NCBI GenBank assembly: GCA_964187785.1
Contig: OZ076415.1
Location: 30,380,001 to 30,444,000 of the forward strand
Reading direction: 5' to 3'
Length of the DNA stretch: 64,000 nucleotides
Source: Amphiscolops sp. MND2022
Taxonomy: Eukaryota
Both the position numbers and the translations under genes were made by a program. Every line of letters begins with the position of its first letter. Within the stretch, counting starts at the first letter, position 1. The notes under the pieces were generated by a model. It had not been told where the DNA came from, did not search any database, and worked only from the letters and a program-made list of their open reading frames with translations. Positions 1 through 63,400 of this stretch are shown here, in pieces.

Positions 1-375
1 GAAACAAATGGTACAATTTCATTACAATATTGTCACCCCGAGTAACAAATACACAAAAAACACGACCTAGAATCTCAGTCTTCATAGGAAACAAGCAAAA
101 AAACAAACAAAAAAACAAAAAAACACAAACCAAAATTACCTGACGCAAATGAGGCATATGTTAAAAGTCTGGTCCATTCACTGAGTTCGACTGCCAAAAA
201 GTTAGGAACTCCAAAACATTAAACGGGTCAACACCGCCCAATCGCTGCTTAAACTGTTTCGTTTCACACGCTGCACGCACTGCACGTCAAAGAAGAACAT
301 GACTACCGTACGCTCAGGAGCCACCAAGTTTGCCAAAGCGCGACCAACTGATACATCATTTTCGACCACAACGCT

Positions 376-2894: not shown

Positions 2895-3094
2895 NNNNNN
2901 NNNNNNNNNNNNNNNNNNNNNNNNNNNNNNNNNNNNNNNNNNNNNNNNNNNNNNNNNNNNNNNNNNNNNNNNNNNNNNNNNNNNNNNNNNNNNNNNNNNN
3001 NNNNNNNNNNNNNNNNNNNNNNNNNNNNNNNNNNNNNNNNNNNNNNNNNNNNNNNNNNNNNNNNNNNNNNNNNNNNNNNNNNNNNNNNNNNNNN
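2895..3094. other. Assembly gap (200 N)
   Basis: Run of N. Confidence 1.
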
Positions 3095-3912
3095 CCACAA
3101 CCCACTCTAACCCAAATCGCGAATAGAAACGATAAACCACTGACAATAACAAAAGAGAAAACACACAATGAAGTGACAAAACGGAACAAGCAATAGAGCA
3201 ACTGGAATTATGTGAACGAGATTGACAAATTGAACGGAGTTGTAACGAAAACATCGACTGCTGCGGTGATTCTTCTCTCTCACTGGTTACTTTAACACGA
3301 CTACCTTTACGACCACCATTAACTACTTACTCGCTATACTTCTACATAAACCGTTCATTGACGTCACAATTCGTTCTCTCCCTTCCGATGATTGCAAAAT
3401 TGTTAATTCTTTCCGACGGGAGCGAAACTACGATGCTAACGACCATTACCACGAGTCGTACAAGCAGTTATTGCGGAAACACTAATACCGATATGAGCCA
3501 CCTAATCAACGAACCTACAACCATTACCAAGCCGAACACCAACTTCCGATCAGCAAATTCTTAATTCAAATTGCATGATTGAAATTAACGACTGAAACCT
3601 TCAGTCGTCACGAACAAACAGCAAACCGAATTAGTACGACACTACTGTCACACCCGAATATCATCCCTGCTGATTTCCCTACCCAAAACCTGACTCTTGT
3701 TTCAAAGAGGCGGAGCGTCATGCTCATTCGTCACAATTCAGAGAATTTTTATTTCATTGGAACCATTTACATGAAGCCATTACATGAGAAATCCTTTAGC
3801 ATAACTAGTCGCCAATTATTTTATACTATCCATGCAAGCTAAATTATCCTATATTTCCTGTCATAGTGCATCCATCTTTTCTTCTATAGTGCATCAATTC
3901 ATCGAAATTTAG

Positions 3913-4085
3913 CACACTCATTATTTGGAAATCATGTGGGATTTACGAAGAGTGTTAGTAGTCATCAGACATATTAGAAGCATCGGTTGAACATTAAAAG
4001 TTCACACTCATTATTTGGAAATCATGTGGGATTAACGACGAGTGCTAGTAGTCATCAGACATATTAGAAGCATCAGTTGAACATT
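3913..4085. repeat. Two-copy tandem repeat, 90-bp period
   Basis: cacactcattatttggaaatcatgtggga...gaacatt starts at 3913 and 4003, with few substitutions. Confidence 0.9.
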
Positions 4086-29390: not shown

Positions 29391-31280
29391 TGTCGTGAGT
29401 ACTCTCTAGTTCCTCGTTTCTATTTGGAAACCTGTAGTACTCATCTCTGGAATCGTTCCTAAACCCACGGTCTAAGGCTTCTCCCACGGTCTAAGCTTCT
29501 AGCCGGATTCTCCTATCTCCTTTCAGGCATGTGTCTTTGACCTGATTTCAAAGTAGCCTGTATCTGCGGCAAAATTTGATCACTAATTGCTTCGTTTATG
29601 GCTTTTTGAAGCTGTGATCTCACTGTACTCATGAAGTCACTCAATTCCCTGGTAATTCTTTGGTTTAACTCTCCTGACAACCTATTGAATTCACTACCTG
29701 AATCTGCATCCCTTCAACTATGTCCATTTTGGGCAAAAGTCCTGATTTCTGCTTCGTGAGAATTAGGATGAGAATTACTATTTTGATTCAACAATGTGTC
29801 AAAACTGGGACTTTCAGGCCTTCTGCCATGATTACTAATCTCGCTTTCATCTCTTCCTGAATGATTCCCACCTAACATGACATCAAGATTCTCTATGTCA
29901 GATAGCATATATACTTCTCTTGATTTCCTAGCCTTCTTCTGTTTCCAGTGGTAGGCATGAGAACCCGATTGTAAATATTTGAATTATTTTATTCGGAAAA
30001 CTGGTATTGTTAGAAAGGTTTCAACAGTAAAGCAGTTTGCAAAATTGTGTCCCCCTAAAGTAAGTAATGGCTATATATACTCTCCCGAGGATGACACTTG
30101 CATTTTTTACATATTTGGAGTGTCTATTAAAGACGATAACAAGGTTCAAATCACATGACATCAGATCATAACATTCCTTAGGGGTTCACAAGAATGCAAT
30201 CTTCAAACAAGCATCAAAATAGGGGAGAGCTTTCGGAATTGATACATATTTGGATAGCCACTTCAAACAAAACATCTACTTTGAGAATGTTAACAAATTA
30301 CAAGGTATTTCAAGTATGAATTATTGGCACGTGCTGGCACGTGAAGACTGATAAGGAATATTGACAAGGTGAATTCATGATTACATGTAGAGGCACATAT
30401 AGCATAGTGGCCTAATGTGGACAACTGACCCGGTGTTGTATCATAAACAACAGTCTGGGTTTGCGCAAAGACTGGTACTTTTGATATATCCTGCACGCGA
30501 ACGCTTAATACATTCTAAAGCATCAAACTATCCAGCACAACTTAAACTAGGAACAAATAACAATAAAAGGAAGAAAGCAACATTGTTACATAATTGGGCC
30601 GGGAAAAGCCATTTGCCTTATTCTAATCGAGCATCAGTAAAATACGATTAAACGGCCTTGGTTTAAAAGTGATATTATAGCTGGGGTACTGGTAGCTAAT
30701 CCGCACTGAGGTACTTATTATCATCAAAACTTTAGAATACTTAATTGCAAGAGTATTTAGCATCTTAACAGCATCTTGTATGAAAATAGCCAAAAATTGC
30801 CATTTGACTCGTGTCCCGGTTGAGGACAGCACAATAGCGTCAATAGGCCTTATTCGGCCATTGATAAAAAGGTATACTATTAGCTCTGCAAATGGTGAAA
30901 TATGATTGGTTTAAATCATGTGCTCAAGTGACGTCGCAGTATTAGCACTCAGCGTCACTTGAAAATGTTTCCTCTACTGCCGTACAGTTGCATGCAACTC
31001 GTCTCAATTTCTGCTTTGATTTATATACACAGCAACTTTAGCAAATTTAACAACACGATTTGGACATTCCAAATCGTATTTTAACAGACTAATAGCCTAA
31101 ATGTTCTATAACATTATGGTACAACAAAAGTATATTAGAAGGATAACCAAAATACGTGTGAGTTTATCTTAAAGTTTGTCTATTTCTAACTTCAATAGGT
31201 TGGTAAAATTCCGGGTATGATGTTCTGTCCTTCAGCAGATGTCGTCATAGTCGTACTGTCACAGGCTGCAGCCTGCGACA
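29391..31280 (-). mobile_element. Solo LTR (1890 bp) of a family related to the 45.6-61.0 kb element
   Basis: TGTCG..CGACA termini; 5-bp TSD TCAGC (29386-29390, 31281-31285). Contains degenerate MPTT..KARKSREV.MLSDIENLDVMLG and ELNQRITRELSDFM..AISDQILPQIQ, homologous to the LTR-encoded gag N-terminus; shares GTAGAGGAAAC and CCAAT motifs. Confidence 0.85.
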
Positions 31281-42400: not shown

Positions 42401-45400
42401 ATTGTCAAGAAAATTGTAAAATATCAGCTCTTGGAACAGAAAATTTTGCGTTTGAAAGAAAAATTGTAAATCACGATAACCTTCTTTTGATCCGTTACTA
42501 GTCATAAACGCGTGGCCAATATGCGCTGCAAAGTCCACTGCCAGGCCAATAGACAATAGAATCAGAACTGCTGAAATTGCGTTGATAGTCACTCCCCAGA
42601 AGTATGTAAATCCGACAACATTGACCTGGAAAACAACAGTTTCAGTCTTAGTGTGTAACCTCGCCATTTAGATACACTTCGCCTCAAAGAGACACCACTT
42701 AGGTTCGCAAATTTCTTTTTCCTTGCTGAAAATAACAATAACGTAATGGAGGTTTTTGGTGGAATGCGTTTCTTTCCAAAAGCAATAGCAAAGTGTCGAA
42801 AAACTAAAAGGAGACCTTTGGCATGGTATAGCCTTGAAAACGTACAATGCTTTTCAAAACATTGTTGTGTTCTAACCCACGAATTCCTGCCCTCCAGTTG
42901 AGCCTGCAAACCTCTAGGTCAACTGTAAATGGCAGGACCAAAAATTGAGTTTTATAGGTTTACCAAAAACTGTCAGTTCGTGTTGTCTTAAACAAGCCAT
43001 CACTGCAGTTTGCATTTTCCATACAGAACGCCGACTAGTGACTCTCTTGCGAATACTTTCAAACTTCACTACATCGGAGCTGGTTGAAATTTTCGAAAAA
43101 CCGTATAAAATTTGTCCCGCTAACATAAAGGCATCCGAAAATTCAGTTACATATCCAAGTGTAAAAACTCTTGGATTTCTTACCAAGAACTTTGATTTTC
43201 CTACAGAATCCTGCTACCTCTTGAATTTCTTGATGAGATCTTGGAAAATCCGGGAGGTGAAAATTTCGATTATTTCAAAATTCAAGGCGGTTTCACAAAT
43301 TGTTGAATTAGGCCTGTTTACAGTAATTTTGGGCCATGTTATGGAAAAGTCTGTAAAATTTTCTCTATAAAACCCTTTTCTGGGTAAATTTACGGCCAAT
43401 TTCAGAGACCAATTGTCAGCAATTACCAATTCTGCAAATTTTCAATCTTGAATGATCAATTTTGGGTCTGGAACATGTAGTTTTTAGATCCGTGATACAT
43501 ACCAATGGGATCTTGTTTTCAATCCTTCTAGATCATGATTTTGCTCATTTTAGATCTGAATTTGCAATTATGAGAGCAAAATTAATGATTTTCCAACTTC
43601 AGCGGCATTTTTCGATCTTTCGTGATCAGATTTGGGTCTGAAATTTGTAATTTTTAGATCCTAATTCCATAATGCTGGATATTTTTGATAATTTTTCAGC
43701 TCATTTGCCGACACTTCTGAAGGTTTTATGATGACTGAGGTTCTAAACGAGGATCTTGAATCCTCTTGCATTTTCTTGCTTATTCTTGGTTTTTCTTGAA
43801 ACTCTTGATAAGAATATTGGGATTTCTTGAATTTCTTGGCACGATCTTGCAAGATCTTGCAAACTCTTGGATTTCTTGGTAAGAGTCTTGGCAAGGTTCT
43901 TATCAAGTAATCCAAGAATATCCAAGATTCTTATCAAGAGTTCCAAGAGTTTTTACACTGGGATTACCTAATCATTGAAACTTTTGTGTTTTTTTCTGCA
44001 CTTTTCCAGCAGACATGAAGATATCAGAGAGAATGGTTACAAATTTAAAAATCTCGGAGCATGTTGAAACATTTCAGTACGTTTCTGAACTTGTTCAGCT
44101 GACATAAAGGTATCTCAGAGTTTGGTAACAGTGGAAGTCAAATTTTCAACTTTTTCGCAACACTTAATCGTTTCACATACTATGTTCTAAGAACTTTTGT
44201 TGTCAATCAATTTCTCTTAGTATCTGAATAGTTCTGCCGACTAGGATCAAAAGATTTTATAGAACTCGTGGGCAATTTCGTGAAAAGTGGGAAAATATGT
44301 GTTTAGTGAGAGTCAAGGATATTGAAACGCGCGAGCACTTGAATATTTGTTTTTTTTTGGTTTCAACACTAACTCAGCTGATAGAAGGACGAATTTTCAA
44401 CAAAAGTTCCGTATTTACATAGTAAAGTACAGTAATGGCCCTTCTATACACAAAATCTTTGTAACCATATTGATTGAATTGTTTTCAAACCCGTTTTCTC
44501 ACAACTTTCAGTCACTGAGAATATTGATTCATCATTTTTTCTATATGCAAAAGGCTTGAAAATATAGTGTGGGCCGATACAGTTCTTTGTATGTTCTTTT
44601 TCCATAATTCTTCAGATCTGACGACTCCGAACTTACTCGCTCGGGAAATTTAATGACTTTGTGCATTTGCAAAAAAACTGCAAATGGTTTGTAAATTTAA
44701 AAAAAACGTTCAGTCGTGAGCGACACCCCGATCTAGTTATTTCTAGGTATTCCATTCTTGAAATGTAAGGTGAGTTTCACGTACCATCGTAAACACGACA
44801 CATGAGAGAACCAATAGAACCGTAGCGATGTTGGCGATTAGCAGTAGACACACCACTAAGACAACTGAAAAGGCCAGCAGAATGTTCCGGATGAATTCTT
44901 CCTTGATAGCCTGAAATCAACCAGTGAAAATGTGTGAAATTTAGCCACAAAAGTCTCATTTGACTCAAGTCAATTGAATTCTATCAATAACATTCTATGT
45001 AAAAAAGATCATTAATTGACCCCATCAAATGACCCCACCCCAGACAACAAATCTTCTGAAGTAAAACGTGGTGTAATTCGGAGTTAATTATACCTTGAGC
45101 AATTGTTCATTGAGGAGAAACAGAGTCTGAAATGTGGAACTTGCAGAGGACAGACGAACTCTTACAAACCATAGAAACTAATTAGTCTGCTTTCTTGTTT
45201 GTATCTATTTATACTACTCTTTGATTAAATACACAGTACCTACACTGCCACATAATTGCAGACGAAGTCCTAAACTCAGTGATAGAAAAGAAGATAGTGA
45301 AAAACGGTTAAATTTTGAATCCTGGGCACCACGACAATTCGTACAAACGACATTTCGTACAATAGCCAAAAACCCGACATTTCGTACACGGACAATTGGT

Positions 45401-48400
45401 ACAAAAATGAAACCGGACAGTTCGTACAAAAGACATTTCGTAAAAAATTTAATTGAACAGATTTGCAAAATAGGTCTCAAACAACAGAGTTACTAGCTTT
45501 CAGTGCTGTTACAGCCAATAAGTATGGAACCTGATTTGTAACGTCCGGCTAGCTAGCGGCGCACATCTAGGAAGAGGGACAATGTCTAGAATGCTTAAAC
45601 AGGAGACCATTGTCTTACTACATCCGTAGACACTAATTTTTGTTCCCAATATGGTCTCTGTCCCAGGCGTCCGCCTGTGATGGCAACTTGTATTCTATTT
45701 GCCACAACTATCAAAAAGCCCTACCCAACACGATCCATTTAAATTGAAACTTTTTAAATGAACCGCATTTGTATCTTAAAAGTCATGTAATTTATTTATT
45801 CTGAATATAAAATATCATGTAGGGATGATTTGATATTTCGTAATACCGGCGCTAATTTGTACGTTGCTAGTAAATTGGACACCAAGGCGTACAGGTAGAG
45901 GAAACGCGTTCAAATGTTTTCTCGCCTGTCGCCTTGGTCCACCGGTCCGATTAACTCGCTAGCCAATCACAGTGCAGTACTTTCTTTATTCGGTGCTGTA
46001 TTATGCTGCTAGATTAAAGGGACTGAGTGGCCATATGCCGCCAGTCAACAATATCTCGGTCCACTCATGTCGATTGGACGCTGAGTCCGTTTTGGAATTA
46101 AAGGCGCTTACTGGAAAGTGCTATGAATTACATAATAACCGGTGCTTTACTGTCTTATTTAGTAAATTATTAGTCCTTAGAGGACATGTAATCTGCATTA
46201 ATTAGTACGCCATCAATGCATTTGATATAATTCATGCAATTAGAAAGTGTTGAAATACATGCAGTTTATTGAGTTCATACATGTATGTCGTTGCTTGTCC
46301 GCATGGACCTCCAGTCTTCCCGCCACAATAACTGTCGGGAAAGGCCCTTTGATCTATGATGATGTCACTAGTTAACCGTTGCTATATTTAGAACTGTTGC
46401 TATTTTTAGAAGCCCTTAAGGCTATTATTAGAAAATGATGATCAATATTATGCGTGTCATGTAGTTTGTTATATATATAGCGGAGACATTTAGTCCCGGG
46501 ACACAAGAAGTTTGACCTTACTACATGCCTGTTACTTGATACTGAGTAATCTCACACTGAATTTGCAAGCCTGAGAACTTAATTTAAATTCTTACCTCTT
46601 GCAACAATCTCTTATGCCTTCTACTAGACATCAAAAAGCGAAAGCTAGGAAATCTAGGGAAATGGACATGATGTCCGACTTTGAAAACTTAGATGTGATG
46701 CTGGGAAATAGCAATAATAATCCCATAGAAAGGGAATTAGCTGAAGCTATAGATCAGTCATCGGCCCATGGGGACGCTGATACACATACGTACCTAGAGA
46801 ATGAATATAGAGATTACCAACATGAAAATGATGTACTGAGACAAAATGAAATCAGACACTCCTTTGAAACCTTCTCGAACGAGTTTAATCTCAGATTATC
46901 TCAAGAAATGGATTCTATGATGTCAATGATGCATAATCAAATAAATAGAGCTGTCACAACGGCTATAAATGAAAGAGTCATTCCAGAAATTCAAAACATT
47001 GCTAGTTCCATGTCCTCCGCTGGGCACAGGGACACTGAGGCCAGTTCGTCCCCGAATAGCCAGGAAAACAAGGAAAGCGCATCTGGGCCTAAAATAAAAA
47101 TTGCAAAGAAGGATTCACGATCTGTAGGAGATCTAAGAGAGACCCTAGGTCAGAGTTCTCACATGGTGACAGGAGCCATTGACACCCAACAGCAGATCCC
47201 TGAATTCCTGACTGGACGAATCCACTCAATCCCGAACCTCCAGAGGCAACATTCCAACCACAATGTCTCTCTGGACACGACTCTGCCAGCCCCAGACCCC
47301 GAGGTCCCAGAGCCACAGCAGGACCCGTTCAACAGATTGGCTGATGTATTAGTCAATTTGCAAAATAAACCACAAACTATGACCATCAGACCTGTCCAAA
47401 CAACTCCAATGACGTTTGACGGAAAAAGCGAAAAATTTGAGCTTTTTGAGGACTTGATCCACACGATGATCAAAATGCAACCTGCAATGACAGAACAGAT
47501 GAAATTCAACCATTTCCATTCATTGCTACGAAAAGGGGCATTACAGACATTTAGGAACATAAACTCCATCAACCGTCAGACTCTGGAAGACGTACTGGTC
47601 ATATTCCGGAGAAAGTACGTTAAACCGGAATCCCAACCGACGGCAAAACACAAATGGCATCGACTGACGTTCGACCCAAATACCATGAAATTGCCGGACT
47701 TCTTGGAAGAACTGAACCAAGGAGCTGAAAAGGCTTTTGGCGAAAATGCAAAAAGCATGATTGACAGTTTGTTATATGCGAAACTTCCACCAAAATTAAA
47801 ACGATCTGTCAACATGGCCCGGTTGGAGAACGGGACGTATGAAGAAATAGTCGCTCATCGTGAAAGAGAGCTAGAACTTAATGCATTAGAAGAGTCCGAT
47901 GACTTGCCAATGGCCACTATGGCCTCGGCGTCAACAAACCAGAGCAACTTACTCTCTACTGGCATCAACACCAACAAAGACGCTCCATGCTCTTATTGCA
48001 AAGCAACCGGACATTTTTACAAAAGCTGTCCTAAACTCAAGAAAAAGAAAGAAATGGAGGAAAAAGATGGCAAAAAACCACAGCGTCCTACTTACCCACC
48101 TTGTGACACATGTGGGAAAAAGAACCATTCAACTGAAAAATGTTGGCAAGGAGCAGGTGCCCACCTGCGTCCCAAGAGCTTACAAGCGGAGCAAAAAGAC
48201 TCAAACGCCTCAACTTCAGAAAGCAAACCTAAAACATCAGGTGACACGACGACCACCAGCTCAAGCCAATCCAATATCACAAAGACAGATCCAAAAAACT
48301 AATTTTGCCACGACTCCAAATACATGACTATATGTCGGTTCGACAGTATGTCATTTCAGACCCTCCAATTATAACATTCCGACACTATATAAAGGATACC

Positions 48401-51400
48401 ACAGGCACCCCATCCGTCGTCTGGCAGCAACAGATGGAGAAAGCCTGCATCAAAACCTATAAACAAGTACACAACGATCGCCCAGACCGATTTTACGAAA
48501 CTGACTATACTAAAGACTTTCAGACTCCATTCCGTCCCTTACCATTGGTCGAAGACTACCACCCTCAATACATTGACGCTGAGTATGGTAAAGATCCGTA
48601 TTGGGATGATGAATTATATGGCAAACGAAATCTCCAATTCCGGAACGAAGACTATCCCCCAACAGACGATGAGGACGATCCCCAAATAGAGGACACTAAA
48701 CTCTCTAGGGCCCTCATTGAACTTTGGCAACCAAATTCTGAAGCAATCACAAGAGAAATAAGGGAAACTCCAGAGCAAGAAGATCACCAAGACCCCAATA
48801 GCCTCCTGGATGAAACAGCCTTCTTGCATATTTTAGTGGAACAACAAGGTGAACCATCATACGTTCCTCTTTCCACTAATCTTGGACTTAAAATTAAAAG
48901 GCGGATGTTATATTTTCCAATGGACTTCGGAGAACTAACGTTAGATGGACTCATAGACACTGGGGCCCACTCCAGCGCTCTCCCAGAAGCAGACCTCAGG
49001 AAAATACGGCTATTAGCGCCTCAATCCATAGTCAAAGAGGGACCTGCCCCATCTTTCCAAATCATGGTCGCAAATGGTGACCTAGAGACTCCCAAAAGCA
49101 CAGTGGAATTGAAATTTGAAGTAGGGGACATTGAGTTCCATGAGATCTTCATTGTGATGGAAAAACTATCCAGCCCCATAATTGGACTTATGTTCTTACA
49201 AAGAAATCACACAGTCCTAGATATGCGCCAAGGCATACTCAACTTCCCCTTTTTCTCGATGCAATTGAAAACGGCTGACCACAAGTACTCGAACGTCATG
49301 GAGCCCATCCTCAATCCTGAGGATGTCACAATTCCACCAAATGACCGTACAATCATCTCCATTCAATCCAGAATTTACGCAGAAAATGCTGTCACTGGGA
49401 TTTTACAGCCCAGTGAACATCTAAATGAAGAAAATGATATACCCTTCTGCGCTGCCATAATTACACTCGATGAAGGGACCACGAGGATACACATTAATAA
49501 TTTTACTGACCAACCCTACAAACTCAAAAAGGGGATGCACATAGCCAACTTCTCAGTAATGACGCCAGAGCAGATGAAACACGTCAGGCCAATAGACCCG
49601 GTGTCCACATGGCACCTCCTCAATGAAAATGAAGAAGATGCTGTTCAATATATCAGCAGCCTTCTGAAAGCCAACAGGAATAACGACCAATATGAACAAT
49701 ACTGGTTCCCAACTCCCGAGAACCCGGGGGACGAAGCGTCCCACACGCCAATACAAAAACGAATACTCAGAGAATTGCGAAATTTGCAAGAAGCAGAAAG
49801 CCTCAATCCTCAAGAAAATGAAGAATCTCGGCAAACATTCCTCAGTAATTTTGATTGGAAAGACTCAATGCTACAACAGCATGAAATCAAACAAATAGAA
49901 GCTCTCTTAGTGGAATTTCATGACATATTTGCACGTCATAGATTTGATATTGGGATGAACGAGGAGTTCACGGTCAAACTGACCCCGAAGGACGACTCAC
50001 CCGCATACAGCCAGAGCTTACCAACTCCAATAAATTTAAAAGAGGATATCCTAGTTGAGCTGGCATTACTTCACAAATACGGTATTATAACTACTTTACC
50101 GTTCTCAAAATATGCCAGTCCTATTTTCGCGCAAAAGAAGCCTAACGGGAAGCTACGATTATTAGTAGACCTCAGGAAGATCAATAATTTGATTTCTGAT
50201 GATTATATTAATAACAACCACCCAGTTAGTACCTTGACGGACGCTACGCAACACATGGCCGGGAAGAGACTTTTTTGCAAACTTGATTGCTCACAGGCGT
50301 ACCACTGCCTCCAAATGGCAGACCAAAGGTCTATTGAAATGCTGGCCTTCAACTTTGCCAGCAGAACTTTCGCTTACAGACGATTGGCCCAAGGACTCAG
50401 TAGAGCCCTGTCGGCCTTCTCTAGCTTCATGAGGGAATACTTGGACCGCGTTATCAAGGCAGACCAATGTGCGCAATATGTCGACGACATTGGCATAGCA
50501 GCAAATGATGCCGAACATTTGATCAAAAACCTCCGAGCCACATTTGAATGCATAAGAGAGGCTGGATTAAAACTCACAATGCACAAATGTCATTTTGGCG
50601 CAACAGAAATTGACTTTCTGGGAAGAACAATCACCCCAGAGGGCGTCAAGCCTCAAAAGGAAAGTATCACAAACTTCCTAGAAAAAACTAACTTTCCGAA
50701 ATCCAAAAAAGCCTTGCAAAGATACCTCGGTTTCCTCAATTATTACAGAAACTACATACCGAGACTATCAGAAAAATTGGCTCCCTTCTTTCAACTACTT
50801 AAGAAGGACGAGAAGGTCTTAGTCACATCAGAGCTGATCGAACAATTCAACGAAATCAATAGAGACCTGGACCGGTGTAGCCAATTAGCCTTGAGGCAAC
50901 CACTGCCGAATCGACAGCTAGTCCTGATGACAGATGCCAGTTTTACGGCAGCAGGATACGCTATACTCACTGAAGACGATCCAAACCAGAAATTCACCTC
51001 AGTCAAGAAATCCTATGCACCTATTGCTTATGGTTCGAAAACTTTTATTCCTTCCCAACTTAAAATGTCGATATATGCGAAAGAATTTCTCGCTATATAT
51101 TACGCATTTAAAGAATTCGGACATATATTCTGGGGGACACCTAAACCGGTAATTATCCTTACAGACAACAAATCGGTCACAAGGTTCTTCCAGACCAAGA
51201 TCATACCGCCGCCATTATGGAATGCCTGTGATTTCGTCATCCAGTTCAACTTTATAATAGCCCACATTCCAGGCAAGAATAATACAGCGGCAGACTATTT
51301 GTCCCGTTTGGAAATGGAACCGACCGAAAAGTTAGTTTTGAAAATTCGTGCAGACGTTGAAACACAGCCTATTGAAGTCAACGTGCAGTCGGCCGGTGTG

Positions 51401-54400
51401 TCCGAAGAGGAACAAGTGTTCTTTACTGAGGAAGATAATGAAACGGAAGAACAAATCTGGGAACGAAAACGACAATCAAAAGCAGGACTCAAGGTCCCGG
51501 AGACTGTCATCCAAATTGATGCCATATCCGAAAATATCGTCGAAGAAATTACTAATTTCACCCAGAAGCTCCGTAGAACTAATCAAATACTGCTAGAGCA
51601 ATCCAAAGACCCGATATTACTTCAATTAAAGGCAAAAATTCAGAATGAAGAATACTCTGAGGAGATCCTCCAACAGGACATCAGGTATAGACATTATTTG
51701 AACAATCTAGACCGAATAGTCCTCAAAGACGAAATTGTCACAAGGAAATACTATGACGAAACAGGCCAAATTAAACACCACCAGATATTACTGCCCAAAC
51801 ACTTGTTAAAAGAATTACTGCAAGCAATACATGGCACGGCCCATAAACACCCGGGCATATCCAAAATGTTACAAGAAATTCGCCAAAAATACTACTACCC
51901 TGGGATAGCCAAACATGTTAAAAAATGGGTAGAAGGCTGTGAGACGTGTGCCAGAGACAAAAGAGTCCCTAACAATACAATCACGCCAGAATTGTTAAAT
52001 TTGCCCGAGTGGGACCTAGGTCCCGAAGATGCCATGCGATCGACTTACTACCAAATCTACCGACTAGTGGAGGATACCAGACAGTGATGACGGCTATTGA
52101 TATATTTTCAAGATACCTATTCGCCTACCCGCTAATTGAGGCAACAGCCACGAATGTAGCCAAGGTGATAATTGACATAATGACGAAACATTCATATTTG
52201 CCAACAACTCTCATCACAGACAAGGGGTCCTCATTTACATCGACCATCATAGCTGAGATAACTCAAATTTTGGGCATAACACTCAAATGCGCAACTACAA
52301 AGCACCCGCAAACAATTGGCAAGCTGGAAAGGACGCATGCCTCACTCAAAACCAATTTGAAAATGGCCTCAGGAGAGTATCGACGCCAATGGCATAAATA
52401 CCTGCCACTAGCAGTACTCAACTATAATACCACATATCACTCCAGTATTGGATGTGAACCGAGTAAAGTCTTTCATGGCCGAATTCCTTTTAACGTCCTA
52501 GATCACAAATTGGGGAACAATCCCAATAAAAATTTCATGCCAACTACAGACTTTGCGGAAGAAGTGCAACAGCGGACACAAATCCTCATTGATCAGACCA
52601 AAATAACATAATGCAGTCCTACCTAAAGTATAAGGACAACTACGACCGAAAGGCTAAAGCGGCTCCGCTTAAAGAAAACGAATATTGTTTTATTCTACAA
52701 CCTAAAGCGGACAGTCAAGCATCAAAGATCCCATTCAGGGAATACAGGTGGATTGGCCCCTTTGTCGTTCAGACAGTACTGTCCAATGACAATTATATTG
52801 TGCGTCGATTAAATACAAATAAAACGCAAATACTACATCGCATTAGATTAAAGAAATTCGTACCAAATGCCCCCTTAGAGGACAAATATGAAGGTGAAAA
52901 ATTACAGCCCGACAATGAGATAGTAATACCACAAGACGACTTGTATTCCATCTCATGGGAAGTGGATTTTGAGTACGACTTATTTGAACCGAGAAAGGAA
53001 GATTGGACCGACGTGGCCACACGCCGGCCGACCGACACTGAGGACAGCTGTGCGGATCATTACGTCATTGAAAATGAACGCAGCAACGCGAGCGAAAATG
53101 AAAGCCGCTCCGAACGAATTAACGAGGATGACGTCACCGAGAATGAAATATGGCCAACAAAGAAGAATAACAGTGACGAATCGTCCCCGCTGAACGAAAC
53201 GCCATATGAGGACGACAATGAAATTGACGTCACTAATGATTTCAAAAATACGGAAAGCGTTTCAAACAGAGGCGCAGATATTACCGTGCCCGGAATATCG
53301 GAAAAAGAAAGCTTTGAAGAAAACTCTAGCCCTAGAGGAGGGAGATATAACCTTCGACCTAACCCCAACCCCAACTTTACTGATGAATACAGATACTAGC
53401 CAGAAATTTGAATTACTAGTCCCCTCTTTATTTTGACTATTGGTCCATGAGGACATTCATTTTTTACTTGGGACTTTCTGACTTACTTTGTTACTTGAAA
53501 TAATTATGTACAATAAAGAAGACCTAGTGGCGAATAATACAAAGCCACGCCCAAACAAAACAACAAACAGATGAAATAAATATAAAGCAGTTTACAACAA
53601 GTACAGTCTAGAAACAAATGTACTCTTTGTACATTTAAGATTTAGAAGTTCCAGGAGCGTTCACATCACTGGACTTTGCGGCTTCAGTTTCACCAGCTGC
53701 CCGAAAGCCAACTTTCTTGCCTTTACCAGGGGACAGCTTACGTTGTTTCCCCCCTTCTTTGGACGAGGAATTGGAAGCGGACTCGATGTCAGGACGGACA
53801 CTCTTGCCCAGAGCTTTGTAGACTGCGATTAAGGTTTTATGTAAATTAGCTTTGCCGAAACTGTCTACGTGTGACCAAGGGTCTCCTGGGACGTTGCCAA
53901 TATTGAATCGGAATTCCAGATCTTTGAATGTACCCAAGGAAGCTTCTGTAGTGCACACAGCCACTGAATTTGCCACATTAGCTAGGTAAGACTGTGCAGG
54001 CATGATGACATCGAAAAGTCTACTTCGGGGATCATTGCAATCAACTCCAGAGAATTTGATGGCTGGGAGCTCTGGCAACTTAGAAGTCAGGCACAGACAA
54101 CTCAACTGGAAGATGTAGAACAGATGTTTCCGCAACTTCAATTCAGGCATACCAATCTCCACGAAATCGACGTACTCGTCTCGGGCATCAGTCTCTGGGG
54201 AATTCTCTAACCAGCCTCGCAAACTAAAGGATCTGTACAGAGCGGAGAAACAATATGTGGCTTGCTCAAGCGGCAGACTCAGGAGGGCTACTGGATCGAA
54301 ACTGCCCAGGCCTCTTACGATACCAGCATTCAGGCTAATGTCGGCAAGGATGACTTTCAAAAGATGGACGAGGTAACCTCGGGCCTTGGTGGCGAAATCG

Positions 54401-57400
54401 TCCCGAATGGCCTCAGCTGCTGTCTCCGTCTCTTCAGGCGTCAGTTGCTTCTCGCTATATATTCTCTTGACGCGAGCATGGCATGCGGCATCCAAATTTT
54501 CTTTGAGCTTCAAGCGACTCAAGAAATCTCGGTTAGACAGTTGTCGCCAATTCTGTCCTTGTAAATCGCCCAGCGACTTCCAGTCCAGGATATCAGGCAC
54601 GTGTCTGGGAAGTAGTGCTCGACCTGCCAACTTGCGGATGAAAGTATGGAACTCTCGGAAGGTGTAGAAGCCACTATCCCTTCGCTGTGCAAACTGACTC
54701 TCGAAGCTCTTGGTGTCTGGAAAACAAAACATTACCATCCTGAAGGGTCCCTATGACACCATTAGACCTAACGTGTCAATCTACTATATCTCGCATGAGC
54801 CTCAAATAGTGGTAAGAGAAACTGAGACCATGAGGTCCGTAGACAAGAGGGAAACCAATATACTAACAATCGCGGACAATTCGTGCGAAGAACTCCAGCT
54901 TGATGGTGAAGAAATCATCAGCTATGATTTCCCACTCGAGGCTTTGGGGCTTGTTTTTGACCCCCTGGTGGACCTGTGGTGGTGCTATCTTCGTCAAATG
55001 CTGGTGCACAGACTTCCAGTTCGCAATCAGTTCCGAACATATGGCTGGTACAGCGGCAATTTCCAGGTGATAGGTAGTCATCGCCTACAATCAACATGTT
55101 TATTGGAGGCAATTCAAAACTGGACCTACAGTCTTACGGACAGTGACCTTACCTTAACGAATTCTGGCATTAGGGCGGCCCAGGGCTGTCCACCGCAATC
55201 GTCCAAGAATGTAACCAGAAACTTCAACTGAGAGAAGAAACTGATGGTACCAAACACGCTGCCCCATCGTTCATGCATCAGGTCCGGCAGACAAAGAGCA
55301 TCAAATCGAAAAGGGTACTCAATCCCTTTTTGGAAGAGGCAAGAACGTTCAAGAAGAGGAATCACCTCTACAGGACACCCAGACACGCTCACAATCTGAG
55401 GTTGTGTTGATAGGACGGACAAGAGACGGGAAAGTACCAACAGGAAACCAGCAGCAGGCTCTGAAGCAGTCCGGTATCGTAGCAAACGGACGACATTGAG
55501 GGATTCGCCCTTCCAGAACCGGATCGAGACAAAGCTGTAGGTGCCTCGCATTTCAAACTCCAGAGAGTACTGACCCGTGACACTGACTTGATACGCGATG
55601 TCAGCGATGCCACAGAGGAAGATGTGATGAAAGATCGTCTAAAACAAAATTAACCAGGATGAAAATGAATCGGGGCTACGTTAGGGCTAAAAGACCCTGA
55701 GGCTAGAAATCGCCAATACTTACTGTCAGTTTGGAGGAGCCCCAATCGTAAGGAGAGAACAGACTCTGATGGTTGGTAACAGTGCCAATCTGTGACCATA
55801 GCGACTCAAGGACGTTTAGATCTCCACAACGAGGAGCGAAGAGAGCAACCATGGAGATTTGGACGCACAGTCTGATCTCCTCCTGCCCAGCGATGGAGCC
55901 CAGGCCAGCCATATGATCCTCGTAGAAGGGGTTACTGCTGCCAGTTTCAACCAAAGGAACTTGCATGAAGAAAGGCTTCTCTTTCTCAAGTTCTAAGGGA
56001 GTCAACAATTGGCCCTTCTTCCCTCTGACTTCGTGCACAATCCGGCCAGTCACCTTGTCCTTCTTCCTTAAGTGCTCATATCTCCAGCGCTGATCTTTGC
56101 GGAAATGCGGCTCACACTGGAAATGGCGGACAATCTCCCGAGCTCCTTTTGAAAAAATGGAAACGTTCGTCTTACATATCTGGCAGTAGAACTTATGTTT
56201 ATTGTGCTCTGGGTCAAGGGGGCCGGTGACGAATGTGCGAGTCCACTGAATTCCTTTGAAATAGGCTTCTTTCATTATTTTGCCTGTGCGTCCAGGAAGC
56301 CGACGACGTTTGCGAGGTGGACTTGAGGCAGAAGCTTGGTCAGTGGTCAATGTGGCTAAAGGCTCATAGTCGGTTGAGCAGAATCCTGGACTAGGGACTT
56401 GTTGTGCGGATGATGGTCCAGATGTTGAAGTCGAACTTTGATCTGGAGGACTTGGAGGGGGATTGATGCTCAGATCCTTGCCAGTTCTTTGCGAATTGAT
56501 GACAAACTCATCTTCCGAACTGAGCGCTCCACTAGTGTACCCCTCAGTCCCAACGTCACTGTCTTCCGCACCTGATCCAAGGCTGCCGCTCTGCTTACGG
56601 AAGATCTTGATTCGCTGCTTCCCGGATCCTTGAGGAGTCCCTTGGGAGCGAATTCCCGCCCGGATCGCTTCTTCCAGCATGTTCTTCATTTGGTGTAAGG
56701 AAGAAGTAATGGTTTCCGTGGAGACGGCACGCAAGATGGAATGGACTTGCCCCTGATTGAAGGCTACGGCCGCATGGCCTACCGGGAGGATGCACGGGTT
56801 GGTCTCATTGAAATGCTGATTTATGAGCGTTCGAGCAGAGGCAGATAGAGGCCTGGTGGGACTGAAGAGCTTCGGGGAAGATGTGCTTGGTAACTCAGCC
56901 GAGGTTGATGGCTTAACATTCTCATGGGTCTCGGTCCCAGCGGAGCTTAGCGCATCCAGTGCAATCAAGAAAGGAGGTTCCTTGACGGTCTCAGCACCTG
57001 AACTATCAAGCAATTCTTCAGCGTCGCTGGTATCTGTTTGAAAGTAATCCGCCTTGGTGACGGAAAATCCAGCTTCACTGACAGCATCATTGCCCCGCTC
57101 AATCTCAGCCTCAGGAGACTCCTTGTCTTGTGACCCAGTCGTGACCTGGGGAATTGGCTCCGACTCAGAAGCTTTCTCAGCGGTTGGCTTTAGTACATTG
57201 TCTACAATGGCAGATGTGGTAGGAGGCAAGAAAGAGATGTCCAATCCAGTGCCTTGACAACCTAGAGTCTGCAACTGACGCTCAATGTACGCAGAGATAC
57301 TCTCATCGGTGGAAGGGATGGGAGTTGGATCAGTCCTAGCTGAGCTGTCTTTTGGCGGATCAGGCTGCTTAGTCTCCGCGTCCTTTATGGCAGTGGCGGT

Positions 57401-60400
57401 CTGGTCGACGACTGTTTCTTCAGCCTGTTGTGGAACTTCTTCTTCTGTTGAAGCCCCAGTAGCGGTAGCGGGAATGATTTCATTGTTCTCTTCGGACGAC
57501 ATGTCTAAATAGAAAGAGATAAAATTAAGCGGAGAACTTCCTGAAAAAGAGTCCATTGCCGCATTAAAAAATCTTCCGGAAGTAGATATTTGAACTCAAG
57601 TGAATGCTTGAGTTATGGGACAGGAAGTACGTGAATGAAATGAGAGCCCTGATCAAGCCTCAAACTAGTTCATTACCAAAAATAGAAATGAAAACCCTTG
57701 AGACGCTACTGACCTGTGTGGACTAAATTGAAGGAGAGAAGTTCTGTATGTAGACTGTGGATGCTGGGTGAATGGTTAATCCTGGAAGTCGGTCTGACGA
57801 AAAGAATTATGTTGGGCTAGAAGTAGTAGTTGAACAGCAGAAGCTGGGTGAGAGAAGCAGATTCTTCTTTGAAAGAGGGAGAGGATGTTGAATATGGGTG
57901 AATTTGCCAAAAGGGACTCAGTGTCGATTGTCCTAGACTGTCCCAAGAAATCCAGAGGCGTTGTAACAAAGTGAAATTACAAAAGGAAACTTCAAATGAA
58001 ATGGAAATAAATATGACGCAAAGACTAAAAGACTAAAGATGATTAAATACTGGCGATAATACAAAGAGAGTAACTGGAGAAGAATTCGAATGTAAAAGAA
58101 TTGAAAGCTGAATTGGCAATGTGACAAAGTGTCAAAATTGGAGTTCGTGGCTATACAGTTTGGTGTCAAATTTGTTATTATTTACAATTTACAGTGTTAT
58201 GTGGATAGAGTCTGCCAGCGATATCTACAATTACTTATTCATTTCGAAAATGTACCATTTTACAAATTATTTCATGATTTTCCAAGATTTCATTAATTTC
58301 AAGGTCATTTTACATTAGTCCTTATATGGATTTACGACCTTGGGGGGCCATTTTATTCAGAAAAGATCGTGCTGCATTCCTATTGGCCAATCAAGATTGC
58401 TGGGGAACGGCGTGGCTGACTGCCATAGCTCACCCTCTTGAAACCTTTAAGTGCTTGATAAGTGTTAATAAACACTTGAAGCGGCACTCTTAATATGGAG
58501 GTGTTGACAAAACTGATGTAAGCCAACAAGGCCGTTGTCGGCGTTATCAAAGAAGGCAAGACGGATAGATGAAAGATATTACCAAGATGGAATTTGTTAT
58601 TGAAAATTTATCCTTCTCAGGAGACGCAAAACCCCGGGAAACTGAGACGAAAACTCCCGCTAGTCGACGGAAGGGAAGGCCGCCATTGTTCTACAATCAT
58701 TTGCAACAACCAGTTGGCTATTTGAAATAAAACTCAAAAAACTTCTCAAAAGAAATCTCTCCGAAAATTGCAAAGAAAATAATTATGGACAAATTCCTAT
58801 CAAGCCATTTCGACTCAGAGTCCCCCGAGTACTTCCCTGAAGACTTTCTGGGCGCAGCCCCAGGAGACGGAATAATTTGCATATCCAGTGATGATGAAAT
58901 GGAATGTGTGAGCAGAGCTTCAGTAGACGACCTAGAATCTCTATCCGACGATGATGAAGTGGCTTTACTGGCGGAATGTGTAGAAAGACAAATGGAACTC
59001 CCATTAGCCTCAGAAAACATTCCAGTGCCCTCCTGTTCAAACCAACAGGGAGAAGATCGCTCCGAGGCCCCCAGGCTCTCATACATCCCTGGACCAATGT
59101 TCGATGCTGGATACTTTGATCTAGGAATGGGGAGAGGGCCAGTCGCAAGAGACACAAGGCTCAAAAACGATCATCCGATTAATATTTGCAGCCAATTAAT
59201 TCCAATGGTGGACACGCCAATGTCCCCCCCTGCTGTAGATAAATACCCTACAGGCGACTGGAGAGCAATGGTAGAGCCCTCTACTAGTAACAAGCAACAA
59301 TGCCCAAGTGGAATACACTTTAAAGGCCCTAGCGACGACAATCCCTACATCACGGGCTGCACAGACTGCCTCATCTGCGGAAAATCTGTGGAACAGATTC
59401 AAGATGAAGCAGTGATTGACTACATGCACAAGACGGCTGTCCGAGGGGAGTCCCCAGAACAATTCAATGCCAGAAGACTAGCGTTCTTAGAAGGAATGAA
59501 GGTGGGCTGCTTCATGCTAATCCCAGGGGGAGTGTCCCAGGCGTCCGCCTGTGATGGCAACTTGTATTCTATTTGCCACAACTATCAAAAAGCCCTACCC
59601 AACACGATCCATTTAAATTGAAACTTTTTAAATGAACCGCATTTGTATCTTAAAAGTCATGTAATTTATTTATTCTGAATATAAAATATCATGTAGGGAT
59701 GATTTGATATTATGTAATACCGGCGCTAATTTGTACGTTGCTAGTAAATTGGACACCAAGGCGTACAGGTAGAGGAAACGCGTTCAAATGTTTTCTCGCC
59801 TGTCGCCTTGGTCCACCGGTCCGATTAACTCGCTAGCCAATCACAGTGCAGTACTTTCTTTATTCGGTGCTGTATTATGCTGCTAGATTAAAGGGACTGA
59901 GTGGCCATATGCCGCCAGTCAACAATATCTCGGTCCACTCATGTCGATTGGACGCTGAGTCCGTTTTGGAATTAAAGGCGCTTACTGGAAAGTGCTATGA
60001 CTTACATAATAACCGGTGCTTTACTGTCTTATTTGGTAAATTATTAGTCCTTAGAGGACATGTAATCTGCATTAATTAGTACGCCATCAATGCATTTGAT
60101 ATAATTCATGCAATTAGAAAGTGTTGAAATACATGCAGTTTATTGAGTTCATACATGTATGTCGTTGCTTGTCCGCATGGACCTCCAGTCTTCCCGCCAC
60201 AATAACTGTCGGGAAAGGCCCTTTGATCTATGATGATGTCACTAGTTAACCGTTGCTATATTTAGAACTGTTGCTATTTTTAGAAGCCCTTAAGGCTATT
60301 ATTAGAAAATGATGATCAATATTATGCGTGTCATGTAGTTTGTTATATATATAGCGGAGACATTTAGTCCCGGGACACAAGAAGTTTGACCTTACTACAT

Positions 60401-63400
60401 GCCTGTTACTTGATACTGAGTAATCTCACACTGAATTTGCAAGCCTGAGAACTTAATTTAAATTCTTACCTCTTGCAACAATCTCTTATGCCTTCTACTA
60501 GACGTCAAAAAGCGAAAGCTAGGAAATCTAGGGAAATGGACATGATGTCCGACTTTGAAAACTTAGATGTGATGCTGGGAAATAGCAATAATAATCCCAT
60601 AGAAAGGGAATTAGCTGAAGCTATAGATCAGTCATCGGCCCATGGGGACGCTGATACACATACGTACCTAGAGAATGAATATAGAGATTACCAACATGAA
60701 AATGATGTACTGAGACAAAATGAAATCAGACACTCCTTTGAAACCTTCTCGAACGAGTTTAATCTCAGATTATCTCAAGAAATGGATTCTATGATGTCAA
60801 TGATGCATAATCAAATAAATAGAGCTGTCACAACGGCTATAAATGAAAGAGTCATTCCAGAAATTCAAAACATTGCTAGTTCCATGTCCTCTGCTGGGCA
60901 CAGGGACACTGAGGCCAGTTCGTCCCCGAATAGCCAGGAAAACAGGGAAAGCGCTTCTGGGCCTAAAATAAAAATTGCAAAGAAGGATTCACGATCTGTA
61001 GGAGATCTAAGAGGGACCCTAGGTCAGAGTTCTCACAGTCTCCTAGGAGATTTTTCTTTCGTCAAAGGAGGCTCCTCTAGCTAGAGCTCCGAGGCGACGT
61101 GCCGGCACTCTCAAAGTCCGGACACACCCCCACAAGCCTGTAAAATTGAATCCTAAGGTTTTTCCCGCAACTCCTACATACTTCCGAGGTCCAAAAAGGT
61201 ATCTAACTGAAATACATTATATTTGGGAAATAAGGACTGAAATGGAGACCTAGTAGGTCAAACATCATCCAAATACTCTGTAAACGGTAACAAAACACGG
61301 GTATAAGCCCCAATAACATTACAGTTCGGATTTGGTCATCAGTCTGGCATCTGGCATCATTCCTCATCTTCGGGGCACAATGGTCTCATTTGGCATTTTT
61401 CTGCCGAAACCCTGTCTTTTTGTTGTCAGATGGCACAATTCCTGATTCTCTCGCCTTCTGGGTGATGACATCTCGGACATTCACGTTCCTGAGTGGGGGT
61501 GGGTTTTTTTGCCTTTATTTTGCTTCCTCTACGGTTTTCGTACCTGCCGGGTCGGCCATCTTGAATGTGCTTGTTTGATACCGCACATTTCGAATTTTTG
61601 ATCGAAATTTTCAAAAAATTCTGCAACGTCCCTTGCCTGACGTTACAATTCAATTAAAGAGGTTAGCATATATGTTGTATGGCTCGGTCGCTTCGCTCCC
61701 TTCGCCAAGTAGCAACATAGAGGCATGGCCAAATGGCACGTCGCTCCGCTTCGCTTCGCTCCTGCATTTAGGGCCTAGGGGTATGTGAACATAGCTGACT
61801 ACGTTATAAAAGTAAGTTGTATAATATAAATTGCACTAAATGTCGGGTTTCATTTTTGTACGAAATGTCTGGTTTCGTTTTTGTACGAAATGTCTGGTTT
61901 CGCTTTTGTACGAAATGTCTGGTTTTGGTTTTTGTACAAGATGTCGTGTGTACGAAATGTCGTGTGTGCGAATTGTCGAGCCCCCTAAATCCTTATATCT
62001 TTCTTGTACAAGTCAACAGGAGATACAACAGAACTAATTTTCTTATATTTCATTTTTGAAAAGTTGCAAGATGAAAACATGTATATTGAAATTGAAAGCA
62101 CAATTATCAACCCACTTTGAATATTGACAACAGTTGAAATCGCTCGGATAATATGAGAACAGACGAAATTTGCTGCAATCATGCAAAAATCAAACACAAA
62201 AACTAGTGTATCCATTGAAATTGGTTTAAAAGATACATGTAAGTATGGCCGTTTCACTGCCCTGGTTAATTCAACTGGTATACATTTACCTTGGCTGTTT
62301 CCCACGATAGAAAAATTTGCGTGTATATAAACGCGTTCTCTGCCCCGAAACCCATTCTGTCGACGACTCTCCGTGAATCCTGCATTGCTACGATTCCCTC
62401 AGTGGAAGTTGAAACTTCGGCCACTTTCAAGTAAAATCGGGAGCTCTGAAAAAGTGAAGATGGATGGTAAGTGAGTTTCAAAACCGATGTTTTGGATGAT
62501 CATCAAGAAGAACATTTTTTTTCGTGAGATACCTTATTCCTTATTACGTATGTACTTAATAGTACGAGTATAATATCCTTGCAAAATTATATTACAAAAA
62601 CAAAACATTAGCATCTAAAATTACAGATATTTTTGGGAGGATCGTTTTTTATGATAATCCAGCCGAAAGTGGCAAGTTGTTTTTTTCTAAGCAGTGTGCA
62701 TCAGTTTTTAACCGTCAGTGCTTTATTTGTAGATGATAGTTTTCTGTAGTCAGAAACTTGAAAATTGTCAAAAACTTAACTTCATGAAATAGCAGCTCTT
62801 AAGCTGTGAAATAGCATTTTTGCGAAAAGAGGGGTAGATTAATAAGCTTTAAAGGAATATTCAGTTCAACTTTCTGAAACTTGATGATCTTGAAAAAATC
62901 ATTCCCATGTTGACAAAAAATTCATTCCTTTCAAGAACCTTGCAAGATTCTTGCAAAAAAACACATTACTTACAAAAACAATTTTCTTGCAAGTAATCAA
63001 AACTGATGACAAAAGTTTCTAAAAAGAAACAATTACTGATATGGAAGTCTTCTCTCCAGTTTCTGCGAAATTTACATCATGCTCGAACGAATTCGCTTCG
63101 TTGTTGATGAACTTTTTGGCCAGATATGTCAATTATTCAATGTTAGATGGCTTTCCTGAACAACAAAAATACAAATTTAACAAAAACCCGTGGTGCCAAA
63201 AATATTTCTCAAATACATCTCAAATACACGCTTTTTTTGATATCGAAATTAGCCGTTGCTAGTTAATCCTCTTCTGCAATCTTCTCAATTTCATAGAATT
63301 ATTTTTTCCGCCCTAAATTTCCACAGGGGAAGTTTGAACTATTTTTTCAGTCCGATTTTTTTTTCATTTAACAAATTTTGTTGTTCAAAAATTAGAGTTT

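Follow-up and report, generated by a model that had tools for sequence, protein, structure and literature searches.

In a 64,000-nt stretch of the Amphiscolops sp. MND2022 genome (assembly GCA_964187785.1, contig OZ076415.1, positions 30,380,001 to 30,444,000; hereafter the window, numbered from its first nucleotide), we analyzed a gene lying in antisense orientation inside a long terminal repeat (LTR) retrotransposon. Comparison with related sequences confirmed that this gene is real and intron-containing. The carrier is a complete 15-kb Ty3/gypsy (Metaviridae-type) LTR retrotransposon at 45659-61037, and the gene (53635-57556) sits between the end of pol (53399) and the start of the 3' LTR (59533), antisense to gag-pol. 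In at least four further samples, related elements keep the antisense gene under strong selection. The interpretation we favor, and hold to be moderately probable, is a functional accessory gene of a marine-invertebrate Ty3/gypsy clade, likely encoding a catalytically inactive, transposase-derived DNA-binding factor.

The carrier shows the hallmarks of a Ty3/gypsy element: its LTRs have TG..CA ends, and it possesses a target duplication, a primer-binding site, a polypurine tract and the order protease, reverse transcriptase (RT), RNase H, integrase. Using blastn of the element against the window, we delimited two LTRs of 1,505 nt each that are 99.4% identical (5' LTR, 45659-47163; 3' LTR, 59533-61037; both plus strand with TG..CA ends), replacing the 300-nt LTRs first given by repeat detection. 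They are flanked by the 5-bp target-site duplication GTCTC (45654-45658 and 61038-61042), read directly from the sequence. Directly 3' of the 5' LTR lies a primer-binding-site-like sequence, TGGTGACAGGAGCC (47164-47177, plus strand), assigned by position and its TGG start, and the polypurine tract AGGGGGAG (59525-59532, plus strand) stands immediately 5' of the 3' LTR. The sense strand encodes gag (46662-48302), found by tblastn with gag of the related locus L007 (91% identity over 46662-48299) and carrying a weak DUF1759 match, and pol (48305-53399), which comprises protease, a weak dUTPase-like stretch, RT, RNase H and integrase. Pfam matches along pol follow, in order, gag-asp_proteas, RVT_1, RT_RNaseH, Integrase_H2C2, rve and Integrase_p58_C.

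Within 53635-57556, the minus strand contains three long open reading frame (ORF) fragments of 617, 141 and 367 aa, with a short fourth piece between the second and the third. Four exons and three GT..AG introns, each with a pyrimidine tract, combine these into a single open frame of 3,618 nt (1,205 codons) in which the sole stop is terminal. Exon 1 (57556-55724, 611 codons) encodes a disordered acidic and Ser-Pro-rich N-terminal part, then a zinc finger and a helical region; exon 2 (55638-55153, 162 codons) holds the predicted RNase H-like core; exon 3 (55084-54868, 72 codons plus 1 nt) is gap-free in the four copies aligned; and exon 4 (54716-53635, stop codon included) encodes an all-helical C-terminal domain and a disordered Ser/Lys-rich tail. 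The intervening introns, on the same minus strand, measure 85 nt (intron 1, 55723-55639, CAG/GTAAGT...TTTTAG/A), 68 nt (intron 2, 55152-55085, AAG/GTAAGG...TTGTAG/G) and 151 nt (intron 3, 54867-54717, ATT/GTTAGT...TTCCAG/A). An earlier note made from the window alone had joined the three fragments and the small piece through three canonical introns, and the splice signals stand exactly at the positions that it gave. All the motifs it quoted also recur in the spliced product: CQIC..H..H, YSLEFE, SIRFW, LIANWKSVHQHL, LEFFARIV..KSFESQFAQ (read across intron 3) and GSFDP. Its frame length of ~1187 aa is correct from the second ATG (57504), from which the product measures 1,187 aa. The likelier start is the first ATG (57556), giving 1,205 aa, because the peptide beginning there (MD.F.GS.P..FIS) is kept in a homologue of 33% overall identity; translation thus probably begins at 57556 and not at 57504.

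Two candidate regulatory features flank the coding region. About 200 nt past the antisense stop lies a candidate polyadenylation signal, AATAAA (53427-53432, minus strand), identified by motif match only. On the other side, between the antisense ATG and a sense ORF, a non-coding block at 58000-58500 is 65-87% identical per 100 nt to the related locus L001, peaking at 87% at 58091-58190. This exceeds the conservation of the coding exons, which are just 56-65% identical to those of L001, and marks the block as a candidate internal promoter or cis element. Upstream of the ATG, conservation alternates: 57557-57690 is conserved, 57700-57990 poorly conserved and 58000-58500 conserved again. This pattern would fit a promoter plus an intron in the 5' untranslated region.

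For comparison, we fetched ten related loci (L001-L010) together with homologous proteins (given P numbers below). Eight of the ten loci share the layout of an antisense gene downstream of the pol of an LTR element, among them L001, L002, L007 and L008 (from one sample), L006, L009 and L010. The last two stem from a different sample and encode antisense proteins just 23-27% identical to that of the window, at the same antisense position. L004 is degraded and lacks a pol within 16 kb, and the L003 sequence is too short to show its surroundings. All three introns have GT..AG at identical positions in L007, L008, L001 and L002, and L003 retains intron 2 at the identical position. Removing the homologous introns yields intact frames of 1,228 aa in L007, 1,227 aa in L008 and 1,201 aa in L001, copies that reach down to ~56% exon-1 nucleotide identity; L002 keeps the three splice-site pairs and carries a stop codon in exon 3, marking it as a decayed copy. 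When the window gene is aligned at the nucleotide level with those of L007, L008 and L001, exons 2 and 3 contain no insertions or deletions. Divergence is greater in the introns than in exons 2-4, with identities of 0.57-0.68 in introns versus 0.76-0.78 in exons for L008, and of 0.34-0.50 versus 0.61-0.65 for L001. Each junction is also read straight through by relatives that lack the intron: junction 1 by P0106/P0107 (from a marine biofilm metagenome), L009 and L010, junction 2 by P0308 and P0345, and junction 3 by L010.

The ratio of nonsynonymous to synonymous divergence (dN/dS; Nei-Gojobori) for the antisense gene overall was 0.15 between the window and L007 and 0.06 between the window and L008. 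In these two pairs, values in the finger, core and C-terminal domain were 0.02-0.12 (0.02-0.04 for aa 426-611, 0.03-0.10 for exon 2 and 0.03-0.12 for exon 4) and rose to ~0.2 in the disordered N-terminal part (0.19) and the tail. For the same pairs, dN/dS was 0.02-0.03 in pol and 0.08 in gag. Purifying selection thus acts on the antisense gene in different element lineages, and it is as strong as on gag. Splice sites, intact frames, selection and intron-less relatives all agree with the claim of the earlier note that an intron-containing antisense gene lies inside an LTR retrotransposon, and the check that it proposed, conservation among element copies, is borne out by splice sites shared with four other copies and low dN/dS. 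Its description of the gene as captured, in the sense of a recent passenger, was not supported: the gene is old and lineage-wide and occupies the same place in elements whose copies of it are 23-27% identical.

Other aspects of divergence differ among the genes of the element. Synonymous divergence between the window and L007 was 1.24 for pol, 0.53 for gag and 0.38 for the antisense gene; because it is so unequal within a single copy pair, recombination between element lineages is suggested. The integrases of L009 and L010 are 65-66% identical to that of the window, between lineages whose antisense proteins are 23-27% identical, and the antisense gene evolves far faster than pol despite its low dN/dS.

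The family extends well beyond the fetched loci. Database searches with pieces of the exons gave, at the 90% identity level, 125 clusters for exon 1, 80 for exon 4 and 28 for exon 2. A profile searched against 1.84 billion representatives produced 960 clusters (50% identity level) at E<=1e-3. The matches are unnamed, exon-sized ORF fragments in ENA or JGI assemblies, produced by prokaryote-style gene finders. The best 150 matches of the representative search consisted of close family fragments only, and a cluster look-up gave no names.

New copies of an LTR retrotransposon are reverse-transcribed from sense genomic RNA, in which introns of an antisense gene read CT..AC and stay unspliced. Antisense introns are therefore copied into every new insertion, as the replicating sense RNA does not splice them; the same logic underlies the reverse orientation of intron-containing cassettes in retroviral vectors. 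Each of the three introns is missing in some lineages, from which it follows that introns were gained or lost in the history of the element clade. True cases lacking intron 1 are P0106/P0107, P0229, P0250, L009 and L010. L004, L005 and L006, also considered, were rejected as such cases, as their ORFs read through an in-frame intron that contributes 24-27 extra residues. Intron 1 is likewise in frame and free of stops in P0016, P0019, P0027, P0030, P0060, P0228, P0235 and P0238, where it adds 24-38 residues, and intron-retention isoforms are possible in members of this kind. In the window, removal of the 85-nt intron 1 is required for an open frame.

The predicted protein is composed of clearly distinguishable parts. 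Residues 1-425 are acidic, rich in Ser, Thr and Pro and fast-evolving, except for a conserved island at aa 237-300 (56657-56848, minus strand) that is kept in P0106/P0107, has a dN/dS of 0.07 and showed no Pfam match. A basic stretch, PPRKRRRLPGR (aa 413-423; 56288-56320, minus strand), resembles a nuclear localization signal (NLS), a role suggested by its composition. It is followed by a zinc finger, C458-x2-C461-x16-H478-x5-H484 (56105-56185, minus strand), recognized by the conservation of its ligands, all four of which are 94-97% conserved over 175-192 non-redundant homologues; the CxxC..H..H finger listed in the earlier note thus corresponds to a conserved motif. Its spacing fits that of BED fingers, although none of 50 members matched the zf-BED model in Pfam. 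Sub-threshold matches of the finger were to ZN292-like (29 of 50 members) and KIN17 C2H2 (17 of 50) models.

We made one structure model per half of the protein. The core was modeled with AlphaFold on the homologue P0106 (residues 487-845), which lacks intron 1, using a 98-row alignment, and the result was transferred to the window protein by alignment. The model has a mean predicted local distance difference test (pLDDT) of 61 and a predicted template modeling (pTM) score of 0.39, with core residues at 70-81. After the finger, a small hairpin leads into ~110 residues of helices, and these into strands and helices in the order b1 (YSLEFE), b2 (..SIRFW), b3, a1, b4 (..IVxVSG) and a2. This predicted RNase H-like segment, from YSLEFE to VSGCP..LLE, covers about aa 634-710 (55342-55572, minus strand). 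In a Foldseek search against 350,542 PDB chains, ranks 1-12 were all Hermes hAT transposase (E 3.4e-4 to 1e-2, probability 0.72-1.0), with alignments of 177-340 columns and template modeling (TM) scores of just 0.2-0.28. Nearly all other top-50 matches were proteins of RNase H fold, namely retroviral integrases, Mos1, ISCth4 and the RNase H of RT. An RNase H-like fold of the core is thus well supported by the model; a specific affinity to hAT is plausible but not proven. A model of the exon-4 domain, made with AlphaFold on the intact relative P0121, predicts an all-helical structure (pLDDT 68.7) of ~340 aa.

The predicted core lacks the canonical catalytic triad of DDE transposases. Over at least 60 non-redundant sequences, every acidic residue in aa 612-773 stays below 80% conservation, and strand b4 is followed by Ser-Gly, not Asp, in nearly all of 14 diverse lineages. 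Only the Glu ending strand 1 (YSLEF-E) is retained widely, in 12 of 13 such lineages. These results accord with the earlier note on two counts, the missing catalytic Asp residues and the YSLEFE..SIRFW pair, which forms predicted strands 1 and 2 of the core. Its further claim of a hAT derivation, for which it had named a Foldseek comparison with Hermes as a check, held in part: Hermes fills the first 12 ranks, with borderline statistics (best E 3.4e-4, TM 0.2-0.28) and no hAT signal from Pfam or sequence profiles.

The copy in the window is itself damaged. Every aligned relative that covers the stretch has 23 extra residues after ..EYVDFVE that are absent from the window copy only, as the result of an in-frame 69-nt deletion in exon 4 (54156/54157, minus strand) that takes out two nearly invariant positions. 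Against the intact 1,652-aa pol of L007, tblastn splits the window pol into three pieces in three frames, and the integrase part shifts frame twice, at ~52010-52040 and ~52600. The broken integrase frame and the 23-aa deletion together indicate that the insertion is not autonomous or fully functional. It is young, as its LTRs differ by just 0.6%, yet defective.

Several points weigh against the interpretation of the gene as an accessory factor derived from an inactive hAT-like transposase. We infer expression and splicing from evolution only, and DNA binding, nuclear location and a benefit to the element are predictions. The deletion falls in a conserved helix region, and the window copy may itself be non-functional. 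The hAT link rests on one medium-to-low-confidence model and borderline Foldseek statistics, and searches of PDB sequences with phmmer and profiles returned nothing meaningful. Pfam scans of the window ORFs, 88 aligned members and nine distant members yielded only weak matches to C2H2 fingers, with no hAT family (zf-BED, DUF4371, Dimer_Tnp_hAT and the like) in the ~97 members scanned. Neither the hAT dimerization domain (PF05699) nor another hAT Pfam family appeared at E<=1-10 in 38 members of the C-terminal domain and the distant lineages, and this helical domain matched nothing in PDB or BFVD, the Hermes insertion domain included (best PDB match, E 0.96, not Hermes). The gene is also not surrounded by terminal inverted repeats with an 8-bp duplication of the hAT type, lying as it does in an LTR element with the 5-bp GTCTC. 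Lastly, some metal binding through the YSLEF-E Glu is possible. In a first alternative, the gene is real and conserved, and the source of its core is not a hAT transposase; it would be a different DDE or integrase superfamily for which no structure has been solved, such as MULE, Kolobok, CACTA or Harbinger, or a further protein of RNase H fold. Hermes would then be just the closest multi-domain structure available. The missing hAT domains and dimerization motif, the preference of the finger for ZN292 and KIN17 C2H2 models over zf-BED, the dissimilarity of the C-terminal and Hermes insertion domains and the low TM-scores all favor such an origin. Against it, all 12 best PDB matches are Hermes, and the solved structures of P-element, piggyBac, RAG1 and Transib fall outside the top 50; moreover, the Hermes alignment spans finger, helical linker and core (237-340 columns), compared with ~150-220 columns for the integrase matches. 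The order of finger, helical region, RNase H core and long helical region is one that we take to parallel hAT proteins. A specific variant, in which the gene arose by duplication of the integrase of the element, is unsupported, as the family profile, compared by hhalign with the integrase of these elements, scored a probability of 0.08%. Overall, we regard a non-hAT source as unlikely, though well worth keeping in view.

A second alternative retains catalysis: the protein could be an active nuclease or recombinase with a non-canonical acidic set, formed, for example, by the YSLEF-E Glu and invariant Asp residues of the C-terminal domain, that acts directly in DNA cleavage or integration. The persistence of the strand-1 Glu is consistent with this, as is the presence in the C-terminal domain of an invariant or nearly invariant D (GSFDP), E and D/H of GDPWxHVD. 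The lack of a conserved acidic residue in aa 612-773 and the Ser-Gly after strand 4 argue against it, the conserved Asp of VFGxID is replaced by Ser in the window lineage and by Asn in L001, and the element already has a very conserved integrase; we consider such an activity highly improbable. The gene might also be a passenger, a recently picked-up host gene fragment or a set of chance ORFs with no role for the element. Its base composition (GC 0.49 and weak A-skew) is unlike that of gag-pol (GC 0.42-0.44 and strong A-skew), and the window copy has suffered its deletion. Its unchanged place in elements of several samples, even at 23% identity, a dN/dS of 0.02-0.12, intact spliced frames in four diverged copies and the antisense placement relative to pol in eight of the nine loci (window included) with sufficiently long flanks, the exception being the degraded L004, nevertheless leave this idea scarcely credible and effectively refuted.

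Taking the accessory-gene interpretation, transcription would start at an internal promoter in the conserved block at ~58000-58500, and the antisense transcript would be spliced and receive its poly(A) tail near 53427, shortly before the position of the pol stop codon. The product would be nuclear. Its long disordered acidic N-terminal part would lead, through the NLS-like stretch, the C2H2 finger (spaced like a BED finger) and a helical linker, to an RNase H-like core, closest to a hAT transposase yet devoid of a conserved Asp/Asp/Glu triad, and on to a novel ~340-aa helical domain. Such a protein may recognize DNA or chromatin, possibly sequences of the element itself, and would promote expression or integration of the element, not DNA cutting. 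An anti-silencing or targeting role is pure conjecture. In a more far-reaching scenario, an old animal gypsy clade recruited an inactive DNA-binding protein derived from a DNA transposase and kept it as an obligatory antisense fourth gene with its own promoter and lineage-variable introns, to direct integration or guard against silencing. Being antisense, the gene would then behave like a host gene inside a mobile element. We view this full sequence of events as possible, with the balance somewhat tilted against it.

Additional features were noted in the carrier and elsewhere in the window. Gag starts ~500 nt inside the LTR (46662-47163), placing the primer-binding site within its reading frame, and the first ~170 gag codons recur with the 3' LTR, at 60536-61048. 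The dUTPase-like stretch between protease and RT (~49320-49570, pol aa 338-420) scores below the Pfam threshold (E 8e-4) and is similarly faint in L002 and L007. A conserved sense ORF of 278 aa (58785-59621, plus strand) extends 89 nt into the 3' LTR and is present in L007, L008, L001 and L002 with 92-35% identity. Its N-terminal part is acidic, the motifs CxxCGKS and ARRxAFxxGM occur in it, and no Pfam family matched; part of its conservation may reflect the polypurine tract and LTR end. An 18-nt unit occurs twice inside each LTR (46374-46411 and 60248-60285), and a ~40-nt tandem repeat (2.9 copies) lies at 45332-45448, just upstream of the 5' LTR. Farther away, an ORF with a C-type lectin domain (7127-8137, minus strand; E 6e-6) is probably an exon of a host gene and identifies the host as an animal, and a weak gag-like relic at 29558-29908 (minus strand), 32% identical to L007 gag, derives from another retroelement. 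The first 4,000 nt of the window (1-4000), with an N run at 2895-3094, resemble the sense strand of gag-pol in composition, with an elevated GC of 0.36-0.45, a strong A-skew and a negative GC skew. This region, whose ORFs lacked Pfam matches, possibly belongs to a further retroelement. Neither the Rfam scan nor the tRNA scan gave a match in the window.

Several known systems share individual traits with the antisense gene. In the predicted order of its parts, a Cys2His2 finger of BED-like spacing toward the N terminus, then helices, an RNase H-like core and a second, long stretch of helices, the window protein is similar to Hermes (the best structural match of the core model) and other hAT transposases and to hAT-derived host proteins (ZBED, ZMYM/DUF4371-type). 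It also shares the loss of the catalytic triad with many domesticated hAT proteins. The window protein differs from hAT proteins in having no sequence-level similarity to them, no dimerization domain and no recognizable insertion domain, and its gene resides in a retrotransposon, not in a host locus or between the terminal inverted repeats of a transposon. VANC of the Mutator element VANDAL21 and the Harbinger-derived ALP1, which the earlier note had invoked, are alike in concept only, as non-catalytic proteins, encoded by a transposon or derived from a transposase, that act on chromatin or silencing. HBZ of human T-cell leukemia virus type 1 (HTLV-1) is an antisense gene in the 3' part of a retroelement with its own promoter, a spliced form and a nuclear regulatory product. 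It is a small basic leucine zipper protein transcribed from the 3' LTR, whereas the window gene probably uses an internal promoter and encodes a protein six times larger, with a zinc finger and RNase H-like core and no sequence relationship to HBZ. Retroviral antisense genes such as HBZ are mentioned in a survey of plant elements (PMC11963269).

In its position, the window gene comes closest to aORF-3R, antisense additional ORFs that plant Ty3/gypsy elements carry between pol and the 3' LTR in Retand/Tat lineages, maize Grande (gene23) and RIRE2 (reviewed in PMC7264820). The Retand product has a Transposase_28 (PF04195) domain (PMC11963269), and aORF-3R products are predicted to be nuclear or DNA-binding, with a suspected regulatory role (PMC7264820, PMC11963269). 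Like the window gene, they lie antisense between pol and the 3' LTR, are lineage-wide and are conserved among related elements. They differ in their plant hosts, the window gene being in an animal with relatives in marine biofilm and invertebrate-type assemblies; the window protein is unrelated to them by sequence and much longer (1,205 aa), and its gene has three introns at positions conserved in five copies. Introns in antisense ORFs are unmentioned in both papers (PMC7264820, PMC11963269). For animal or hAT-like antisense genes in LTR retrotransposons, the literature searched gave plant aORF papers only, and it contained no animal antisense genes with verified exon-intron structure. Relative to aORF-3R and HBZ, the new aspects are the animal host, the new protein family, the conserved and junction-verified exon-intron structure and the transposase-like core.

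Antisense extra genes have been documented in plant LTR retrotransposons and a few retroviruses. The family described here is large, with hundreds of clusters, and strongly constrained, and it adds a new protein family with a novel helical domain. Bacterial-style ORF callers break its gene into three or four unnamed proteins. With a transposase-like protein in a retrotransposon, the element combines the two great classes of transposons and offers a tractable system for roles of accessory proteins in retrotransposons, such as targeting, transcription and anti-silencing. The gene, inherited only via unspliced antisense copying, also provides a natural experiment on intron gain and loss.

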